NCBI RefSeq assembly: GCF_052425735.1
Contig: NC_135769.1
Location: forward strand, 1,984,001 to 2,048,000
DNA: 64,000 nucleotides
Direction: 5' to 3'
Source of the DNA: Oculina patagonica
Lineage: Eukaryota
This document shows positions 30,137-31,800 of the stretch, piece after piece. The position numbers were made by a program, and so were the translations under genes. Position 1 is the first letter of the stretch, and each line of letters begins with the position of its first letter. A model generated the notes under the pieces. The model worked only from the letters and a program-made list of their open reading frames with translations, was not told where the DNA came from and did no database searches.

Positions 30137-31800
30137 ATGAACAAGTTTGTACTGATCCTGCTGGTAGGATGTTCACTTGGCGTTCTTATGAACGCTGTTG
30201 TATCCGAAGAACCATTCGAAACAGCCGTCGAGACAGAGAAAAGCAATGATTATGGTGTAAAGGCTGAAACAGTTGACTCCACTAGCGATGAAGATGAACT
30301 GGACGACGAGAACGCCTTTGAGAACGAAGATGAAGAAGACGAAGAAGAAGATGCCGGTGATGACGAAGAAAATGTTGATGATCTTGAAGGGTAACTAACT
30401 TTTTTATGCCTTAAAATCCACGATTTAGTCATTACTTAACGGGACTATGTCACGGGGAATTCGCAGATTTTTTTATCTAAACTGTTCTGAAATTAGTGGT
30501 AGGCAACTTAACCCTGAATAAACACTATCTTTGAAATCTAAAGGAATATAGAACCTTAATTTGCGGATAGAAATCAACCTACGGCTATCAATATCGATAT
30601 TTCGAAGAAAACTTGGAAACAAATTGAAAACGTCTGGCTAACTTTTTCAAATTGCAATCCGTTTCCATCCGAGCCATCCGCAGCCAAAGATGCTTGTTAA
30701 CAGTTTCAGTGCTCTAATATTACAATTTTTATTAAAAATGGACTATTATTTTTAGGTTTCCTGCAAAAGAAAAATAACTTTTGGTGGTTCAAAATTAGTG
30801 AAAATCCGTGACACAGTCCCTTTAACCTCGCCTAGTTTGACAAACCCCTCGGTGCAAAGCCTTTGATATTTTTTTTCTTCACTATACTATACGTGGCACC
30901 GACTTTAAACAAAAATTGGCGTTCTACATTGTATAAAATCTGTTGAAAAACGCTTCGGAGATTTAATAATTTTCTAGATCTACTTCACAGATATAATTCC
31001 TTTGTCCGGAGACCTTTCTATATTGCTTCGCGATTTTCATGATAGTAAATGTGAGCAAGGTTAATAGTCCAAGAAGGGCAATTCAGAGAAGAAAAAGTTA
31101 AAAACGATAGCAGGTATTAGTGTTTGGGTTTAACATAGAGTTGTTTTTTGTCACGATATTTCGCTCGTGTAACCAATTGCTCGCCCATCGCGGCTCATTC
31201 AAATGCCGTGGATGATGATATAAATTTGGAGGTGGCGCTATTTTTGTCGTTCCCTTGGCCCAATTGAGTCCCAAGGGACAAAACCTGAAAATACCTTGCG
31301 CTATTTTTTAGCATCAGTGCCCTTGATATGAGGTTAAAATATAAAAATAACAACAATCAGTTATTAACTACCATGCATTTCCTTTCATTGTCACGAAGGT
31401 GAAAAGTGAGGGTGCTAACTGTTAAGAAAACTGACTGAATTCTACCATTTTCTCTTTCAGAAACCATGACATACAAGAAGATCCAAGACCGAAACCATTT
31501 ATAAGATTCCGTGTCCCGAGGATCCCGAGAATCCCGAGAATTCCGAGGATCCCTTTCCCAAGAATCCCGAGGATCCCGAGAATCCCAAGAATTCCAAGGA
31601 TCCCTTTCCCAAGAATCCCGAGGATCCCGAGAATCCCAAGAATTCCAAGGATCCCTTTTCCAAGAATCCCGAGGATCCCGAGAATCCCGAGAATTCCGAG
31701 GATCCCTATCCCAAGAATCCCGAGAATCCCGAGGTTCCCCAGAATTCCAAGGATCCCGAGGATCCCGAGGTTCCGGCCGTGGGGAAAGAAGAAGCGTTGA
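30137..31800 (+). CDS. Prepropeptide, 197 aa: signal peptide + acidic propiece + (Pro-Arg-Ile)n cationic domain ending W-G-KKKR; putative proline-rich antimicrobial peptide (exons 30137-30390, 31461-31800)
   Basis: Exon 1 [28 protein letters not shown]...DDLE ends GG|GTAACT (phase 2); acceptor TTTCTCTTTCAG at 31460; exon 2 reads [18 protein letters not shown](PRI)4PF(PRI)5PF(PRI)5PF(PRI)5PI(PRI)2PRF(PRI)3[11 protein letters not shown]. Function is inferred. Confidence 0.88.
30440..30821. mobile_element. Kolobok-like MITE with TTAA TSD in the prepropeptide intron
   Basis: TTAA|CGGGACTATGTCACGG ... CCGTGACACAGTCCCT|TTAA. Confidence 0.65.
31516..31773 (+). repeat. Coding 9-bp microrepeat (CCR AGR ATY) organised as a 51-bp higher-order repeat
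   Basis: 24 PRI and 2 PRF triplets, punctuated every 17 codons by PF or PI. Confidence 0.9.

Follow-up and report, generated by a model that had tools for sequence, protein, structure and literature searches.

The window analysed here is a stretch of 64,000 nucleotides (nt) from Oculina patagonica (contig NC_135769.1), and all coordinates refer to it unless another locus is named. Between positions 30137 and 31800 of its + strand lies a two-exon gene, with exon 1 (30137–30390) and exon 2 (from 31461) separated by a GT..AG intron, and with a spliced open reading frame (ORF) of 197 residues that reads, in order, a signal peptide of ~20 residues, an acidic propiece of 73 residues, a QEDP boundary, a polycation of 99 residues rich in Pro-Arg-Ile triplets, and G-KKKR-stop. 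The gene is genuine, abundantly transcribed, composed of two exons, and that of a stony coral, with RNA contigs from three runs, each bearing a different organism label, skipping exactly from 30390 to 31461 with GT..AG ends, and with word depths across the junction of 12,189, 5,982, and 1,101 compared with 57, 30, and 21 across the unique intron sequence. The gene model, splice frame, and domain order proposed by a model from the letters alone (hereafter the initial annotation) are thus borne out by the sequence and by the exact RNA joint. The parts of the transcript and its promoter are as follows.

30042–30051, + strand: TATA box TATATATAAA, recognised from sequence, ~30 nt 5' of the RNA contig starts.
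30078–30136, + strand: 5' untranslated region (UTR), start approximate, placed from depth and from a run X2 RNA contig beginning at 30078.
30137–30196, + strand: putative signal peptide of ~20 residues (MNK and 15 hydrophobic residues), mean Kyte-Doolittle value 2.8 over residues 4–18.
30197–30390, + strand: exon-1 part of the acidic propiece.
30391–31460, + strand: phase-2 GT..AG intron of 1070 nt, its junction found in three RNA runs, holding an interspersed repeat at ~30433–30777.
31461–31485, + strand: end of the propiece, (G)NHDIQEDP, a conserved boundary motif, with (Q)EDP or MDP at the same place in relatives.
31486–31782, + strand: predicted mature polycation of 99 residues, units (PRI)4-5 + PF/PI and then ..PRFRPW, 12.3 kDa, net charge +31.
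31783–31800, + strand: Gly (putative amide donor), KKKR, and TGA, with the Gly kept across the family.
31801–31926, + strand: 3' UTR, AATAAA at 31901–31906, with one RNA contig ending at 31926 and another continuing beyond 32000.

Translation runs from the ATG at 30137 to the TGA at 31798–31800, with the donor ..GAAGG/GTAACT following 30390 and the acceptor TTCTCTTTCAG/A at 31460/31461 preceded by a pyrimidine-rich tract before the AG. Exon 1 is 254 nt long and carries two bases over, so the intron is of phase 2, and the exon-2 frame is absent from the ORF list because exon 2 has no start codon of its own. The signal peptide is probably cut after Ala20, or after a conserved S-L-G at residue 15. 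The whole propiece of 73 residues holds 35 Asp and Glu, giving a net charge of −33 and an isoelectric point of 4.05. Searches of the locus against the window with tblastn and blastn returned only the gene itself and a copy of the intron repeat, with no paralogue found.

The high RNA depth at 30433–30777 within the intron falls on the interspersed repeat, where the RNA contigs carry many mismatches, indicating that these reads come from other copies of the repeat. A second copy, 77% identical, lies at 23561–23907 on the − strand. Two differences between RNA contigs and the window were seen in the gene. The contig of run X6 has a 27-nt gap (9 codons) across the junction region 31460–31571, in the first repeat units, which may be an in-frame difference in repeat number between individuals, or an assembly collapse. 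The organism-B contig reads AA>GG at 31786–31787, which replaces the first tail Lys by Gly (W-G-G-KKR) and retains a Gly-basic end. All Arg codons of the repeat (31514–31769) are AGA or AGG, each AG providing an in-frame acceptor option for the phase-2 donor, and of the 28 alternative in-frame splice models counted in the repeat, none is among the listed RNA joints.

The polycation comprises 33% Pro, 30% Arg, and 26% Ile, and has a charge of +31 with no Asp, Glu, or Cys; its 24 PRI and two PRF triplets, and its 30 Arg and single Lys, recount exactly as first reported. As all three frames are open across the repeat region, an open frame is in itself no evidence of coding. The 24 PRI nonamers, however, occur in seven DNA versions that differ solely at third codon positions of the PRI frame, and this exclusively synonymous variation implies that the protein sequence is under constraint. 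The PRI frame would therefore appear to be the real coding frame, under selection, and other species show this frame again, together with its intron phase and end motifs. Tandem Repeats Finder describes 31514–31769 as 4.8 copies of a 51-nt period with 93% matches, corresponding to a protein unit of 17 residues, (PRI)5-PF, alongside one (PRI)4-PF unit, one unit with PI at its end, and a less regular tail.

This 17-residue unit does not agree with the strict three-residue period, with separate Arg, Ile, and Pro faces, that the initial annotation had described, with PF or PI dipeptides breaking the array every 17 residues, and with relatives of the gene using units such as PRIPKPRIPL, PRFPR, and RYRFRYRITP in which the strict PRI period is not conserved. 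On an ideal polyproline II helix each PF would shift the register by two positions, so that separate faces would be possible only within segments of 15 residues and not along a whole rod. AlphaFold2, run without an alignment, predicts neither helix nor strand, with a predicted local distance difference test value of ~80 across the repeat and a predicted template modelling score of 0.16, suggesting that the mature domain is an extended chain without a fold. The PRP motif is absent from the 99 residues, in which P-x-P occurs only five times, in RPKP and where PF or PI joins the units. Nor are there internal basic or Gly-basic sites for cleavage, the single Gly-basic site being C-terminal.

By its sequence the gene is one member of a scleractinian family that has not previously been studied, its signal peptide, acidic piece, phase-2 intron, (Q)EDP and X-Pro boundary, and C-terminal Gly recurring in at least 10 other assemblies. 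A word search with the exon-2 frame led to P0001, an ORF corresponding to exon 2 that lies at locus L001, on a contig of 291 kb from a different assembly, where the 180 nt upstream of the orthologue align at 67% with those of the window gene, and a search with exon 1 led to six short ORFs with the same signal peptide and acidic piece. Profile A1, built from eight such exon-1 sequences and searched against 1.84 billion representatives, gave 25 matches at E ≤ 0.001, 12 of them at E ≤ 1e-10 (best E 2e-28), nearly all being ORFs of exon-1 size. A conserved prepro cassette is found in all 25, with the signal peptide MNKFVLIALVGCSLG.., then VVSEEPFE, then a piece rich in Asp and Glu. At six of the loci, exon 2 encodes a mature part that differs from one locus to the next.

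L001: QEDP then KPFWGG; (PRIPKPRIPL)n, 90 residues; end PW-G-KRK.
L005: QEDP then RPRAWG; 54 residues; end RL-G-RKKK.
L008: KEDP then KAWRF; Arg/Tyr/Phe repeats, 52 residues; end SW-G-KK.
L009: QEDP then IPRRK; (PRFPR)n, 112 residues; end PWRRR-G.
L010: QMDP then RPAF; PRF/PRY/PRT/PRW units, 61 residues; end RR-G-RKK.
L012: QEDP then KPFF; ~55 residues; end PF-G-KK.

In addition, L002 and L007 are a partial close and a partial distant relative respectively, and a spliced mRNA contig, L006, codes for a short form, QEDP-KPFW-G-RQRR, with a short tail. Every complete case (the window gene, L001, L005, L008, L009, L010, and L012) has a phase-2 intron situated 5–8 codons ahead of the boundary motif, the (Q)EDP or MDP motif stands at the same place in L001, L002, L005–L010, and L012, and at least one X-Pro or X-Ala dipeptide follows it in every member, as stepwise trimming by dipeptidyl peptidases, proposed at the outset, would require. 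The C-terminal Gly is present in 9/9 complete members having a C-terminus, with or without following Lys/Arg, as would be expected of the amidation signal it was taken for. Conservation thus covers the signal peptide, VVSEEPFE, the acidic propiece, the intron, (Q)EDP with X-Pro/X-Ala, and a Gly at or near the C-terminus. The mature domains are all Cys-free, acid-free Pro/Arg/hydrophobic repeats, and vary in length (52–112 residues), repeat unit, hydrophobic residue (Ile, Leu, Phe, Tyr, or Trp), and the residue before the terminal Gly (W, L, F, or R). At L004 (10001–14671; P0011) an intact exon 1 is accompanied by no intact exon 2 within 6 kb, with a degenerate Pro/Arg stretch lying beside a retroelement-like ORF, and this is possibly a decaying family copy.

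All named hosts of the family are stony corals. L012 is from Pocillopora meandrina (GCA_942486045.1, CALNXJ010000010.1; L012 5001–6286), where the public model, CAH3106297.1, reads exon 2 out of frame and so misses the cationic domain; use of the donor at L012 5248 and the acceptor at L012 6091 gives a member of 147 residues with a Pro/Arg/Ile domain of ~55 residues ending PF-G-KK. Profile A2, built from seven mature domains, retrieves XP_044169716.1 from Acropora millepora, a correctly spliced, full-length member with PRFPR/PRFPRF repeats and the end PF-G-KK, whose N-terminus matches window exon 1 with a BLASTP E of 3e-11. This protein carries the automatic name ‘glutamic acid-rich protein-like isoform X3’, and the A. 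millepora relative is annotated with several isoforms. Pocillopora is placed in the suborder Vacatina and Acropora in the other of the main clades of stony corals, which makes the family an old one within this group. An Orbicella ‘glutamic acid-rich protein-like’ gene, up-regulated near lesions, was also considered, but its identity with the family could not be checked and it is not used as evidence.

The family has been hidden from annotation by a coding frame without a start codon in exon 2, with one public model mis-framed and another named automatically for its acidic residues. Pfam finds no family in either exon or in two relatives, and eleven sequence strings of the family gave no match in paper searches. 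The initial annotation knew of no described cnidarian proline-rich antimicrobial peptide (AMP) of this form, and none is described in reviews of aquatic-invertebrate AMPs or of invertebrate proline-rich peptides, the latter not referring to Cnidaria or corals at all. A match to a solved structure, the PxxP linker of an inulosucrase (E = 0.002), was discarded as low-complexity. Trypsin would cut the mature domain to IPR tripeptides, therefore proteomes of skeleton or mucus could not have detected it.

The net charges of propiece and mature domain in the window gene and five relatives are given below.

Window gene: propiece −33, mature domain +31.
L001: propiece −42, mature domain +27.
L005: propiece −33, mature domain +19.
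L008: propiece −41, mature domain +21.
L009: propiece −49, mature domain +48.
L010: propiece −33, mature domain +20.

The near-equal and opposite charges of the window gene raise the possibility of a structural or material role, in which an equal polyanion and polycation would form a complex coacervate, adhesive, or organic matrix of the skeleton, of larval attachment, or of mucus. The restriction of named hosts to stony corals and the very high transcript level, typical of structural secreted proteins, are consistent with such a role, and digestion with trypsin would have kept the domain out of sight in skeletal and mucus proteomes. The near-cancelling charges are real in the window gene, however they are not a family rule, with the balance lost in relatives (−42/+27, −33/+19, −41/+21). 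Furthermore, the repeat unit is fully replaced from one species to the next under constant processing signals, a pattern closer to a defence arms race than to a material of set mechanics, and a clam and unidentified marine eukaryotes have precursors of this design with classical dibasic cleavage sites. We therefore regard a structural role as unlikely, although were these domains the structural partners of their own acidic propiece, they would constitute a new self-neutralising polyelectrolyte system.

The boundary motifs could also be read as those of a signalling precursor, with a short amidated end fragment (..RPW-amide, or an N-terminal piece resembling KPFW-amide) as the active product and the repeat as a spacer. 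Acidic-site and X-Pro processing at the N-terminus together with Gly-basic amidation is reportedly, from the work of Grimmelikhuijzen, the pattern of cnidarian neuropeptides. The short form at L006 encodes QEDP-KPFW-G-RQRR, a classic single neuropeptide-like unit, and both L001 and L007 have the KPF..W-G motif at their start, with a similar motif in L005. Cnidarian neuropeptide precursors hold several short Gly-basic copies, an arrangement that the short form at L006 fits and the window gene does not, its 99-residue domain being devoid of internal basic or Gly-basic sites. The residues before the C-terminal Gly are not conserved, the synonymous variation of the repeat implies a constrained protein rather than a spacer, and expression is far above the usual neuropeptide level, so that a signalling role seems very unlikely.

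The best explanation, to which we assign about an even chance, is that the gene encodes a secreted host-defence polycation acting on microbial envelopes. Under this explanation the precursor, which enters the secretory pathway via its signal peptide, would be cut at the conserved (Q)EDP boundary, whereupon X-Pro dipeptides (RP, KP) would be trimmed stepwise, the KKKR tail removed, and the C-terminal Trp amidated by means of the Gly. This would leave an extended, non-helical peptide of ~95–99 residues, devoid of Cys and built of (PRI)5-PF units, which may bind anionic microbial surfaces and permeabilise or agglutinate them in the manner of the A-type myticalins of mussels. The defence role is the best guess because the closest characterised analogue is myticalin A5, an amidated peptide of nine consecutive P-R-X triplets that is active on bacteria, permeabilises membranes, and lacks a ribosome-binding consensus. 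According to the authors of the myticalin work, antimicrobial peptides and toxins typically form families in which the prepro region is conserved, the cationic mature part is hypervariable and accompanied by an anionic partner, and the product is amidated; the very high expression, the conserved prepro and hypervariable mature parts, the charge-opposed propiece, the amidation signal, and the extended chain of the AlphaFold2 model are all counted for a defence role here. The tail-to-tail neighbour of the gene (34606–36479, − strand) encodes a signal peptide and an acidic region, with a second exon ending in an amphipathic cationic 17-mer followed by G-KRK; it is another precursor of a predicted amidated cationic peptide, and is also counted for defence.

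Several points weigh against this explanation. The defence function is predicted by analogy, and the likeness to myticalins is compositional and convergent, not homologous. The mature domain, at 99 residues, exceeds the longest cited mature peptides (myticalins, 23–42 residues; Bac5, 43 residues), and the N-terminal cleavage enzyme for the acidic site is hypothetical. Across the six members the charges of propiece and mature domain are suggestively but not significantly correlated (r = 0.73, p = 0.10), with the charge of the propiece being the larger in most. Finally, run X22 (polyA, single-end, and of the same species label as X2) has no reads on the exons, indicating that expression is not universal and depends on condition or stage.

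Conservation of the prepro region with a hypervariable mature part is likewise a feature of toxin families, and Arg-rich extended peptides penetrate cells. These features would suit a venom, cnidocyte, or cell-penetrating effector directed against eukaryotic prey, competitors, or the coral's own symbionts. The family, however, lacks a Cys scaffold and resembles none of the toxin families, with Pfam giving no match and solved structures giving only the PxxP linker at E = 0.002, and we consider such an effector highly improbable.

With respect to mechanism, the initial annotation had pointed to Bac5, Bac7, and related peptides that block the ribosome exit tunnel, and a classical, non-lytic proline-rich antimicrobial peptide (PrAMP), taken up by an SbmA-type transporter, would be its natural extension. 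The Pro and Arg contents fall in the range of the class, the composition resembles that of Bac5 and Bac7, and the top feature-based match in the ESM Atlas is an apidaecin precursor, with a score of only 0.62 that lies below the useful level and makes it a lead only. Conversely, the domain has no PRP motif, its 99-residue chain is far longer than known SbmA-transported peptides, and Vibrio natriegens lacks SbmA and is naturally insensitive. The idea of a tunnel block is further weakened by the nearest P-R-X peptide, myticalin A5, which is lytic, without a ribosome consensus, and acts on membranes. A classical PrAMP is thus decidedly unlikely, and a secreted defence polycation of this kind would more likely act on membranes than by blocking the ribosome tunnel.

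Elsewhere in the window, rhodopsin-family G protein-coupled receptor ORFs (7tm_1) lie on the − strand at 43741–44466 and 41049–41588 (E 2e-41 and 1.5e-5 respectively), and a reverse-transcriptase ORF (RVT_1) lies at 51108–53309 (+).

Compared with known PrAMPs, the 33% Pro and 30% Arg of the domain agree with the high Pro/Arg content of the class, whose Pro content is 14–49% (PMC11678341), whilst neither the PRP motif nor the ribosome-binding consensus (type I or II) is found. The Pro-rich cathelicidins Bac5, Bac7, and PR-39 are similarly dominated by Pro, Arg, Ile, and Phe, contain tandem repeats, and are stored with a pro-region. They differ from the coral domain in their cathelin prodomain, their PRP or PPX motifs in place of P-R-X triplets, and their length of 39–60 residues, and have no sequence relation to it. 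Bac5 and PR-39 are amidated. The mechanism of this group is that of the ribosome tunnel with SbmA uptake, Bac5 acting through its N-terminal 17 residues.

Among cnidarian peptides, the arminins of Hydra are alpha-helical and periculin has eight Cys, whereas the coral domain has Pro every third residue and no Cys. A helix is excluded by this Pro spacing together with the lack of helix in the AlphaFold2 model, and the family searches, in which no arminin sequence was compared directly, returned no arminin and no sequence similar to the Hydra peptides. The only three characterised coral AMPs, damicornin, AmAMP1, and digitiferin, all have Cys-rich, six-Cys ShK-type folds; like the present family they are secreted coral peptides with a pro-region, and unlike it they are neither Cys-free nor repetitive. 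Coral disease and the control of the coral microbiome are major open problems, and transcripts of the family are abundant, with members in Acropora, Pocillopora, and the window species. If its members are defence effectors, they would form a new class in cnidarian immunity and provide a natural series of repeat variants for studying extended P-R-X polycations on membranes.

The design itself extends beyond corals. The A2 search also returned look-alikes from the clam Mactra antiquata (KAL4218008.1), from a marine metatranscriptome (MERC ERR1711976_76083), and from a JGI metagenome (protein P0066), which share a signal peptide, an acidic region, a (PRIPI)n, (PRIRI)n, or (RIPRY)n repeat, and an aromatic-Gly-basic end. 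They differ from the coral family in their unrelated signal peptides, and two are equipped with cleavage sites of the classical KR or REKR type; all three are uncharacterised. The recurrence of one design behind unrelated signal peptides suggests repeated invention or a wider undescribed distribution. Taken together, and at a likelihood that we place somewhat short of even, both major stony-coral clades would carry fast-evolving, very long (52–112 residues), Cys-free, amidated Pro-Arg-hydrophobic repeat polycations that are the first proline-rich defence peptides of Cnidaria, with the P-R-X design having arisen independently in mussels, a clam, and unidentified marine eukaryotes as a recurrent marine mucosal weapon missed by annotation and tryptic proteomics.

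The closest characterised analogues remain the A-type myticalins of Mytilus and the modiocalins. As in the coral family, these are secreted, Cys-free, linear cationic peptides of P-R-hydrophobic/aromatic triplets, with Gly-directed C-terminal amidation and a precursor that includes an anionic pro-region; they form a multigene family in which the signal and anionic parts are conserved and the mature part is hypervariable, and the PRF/PRY/PRW units of L010 are very close to the myticalin style. The myticalin signal peptide (consensus MKGxxLLLLTI..) differs from that of the corals, and the myticalin order of signal peptide, mature peptide, KR, and anionic C-terminal tail is reversed in the coral precursors. 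Myticalin genes have three exons and a phase-1 intron, compared with two exons and a phase-2 intron in the corals, and the N-terminal boundary in the corals is (Q)EDP followed by X-Pro and not a dibasic site, the two groups belonging to different phyla. Whilst the general design is therefore already known from mussels, the coral precursors constitute a non-homologous new family, the first of its type in Cnidaria, with a reversed domain order and with mature domains two to three times longer than those of the myticalins (52–112 compared with 23–42 residues).

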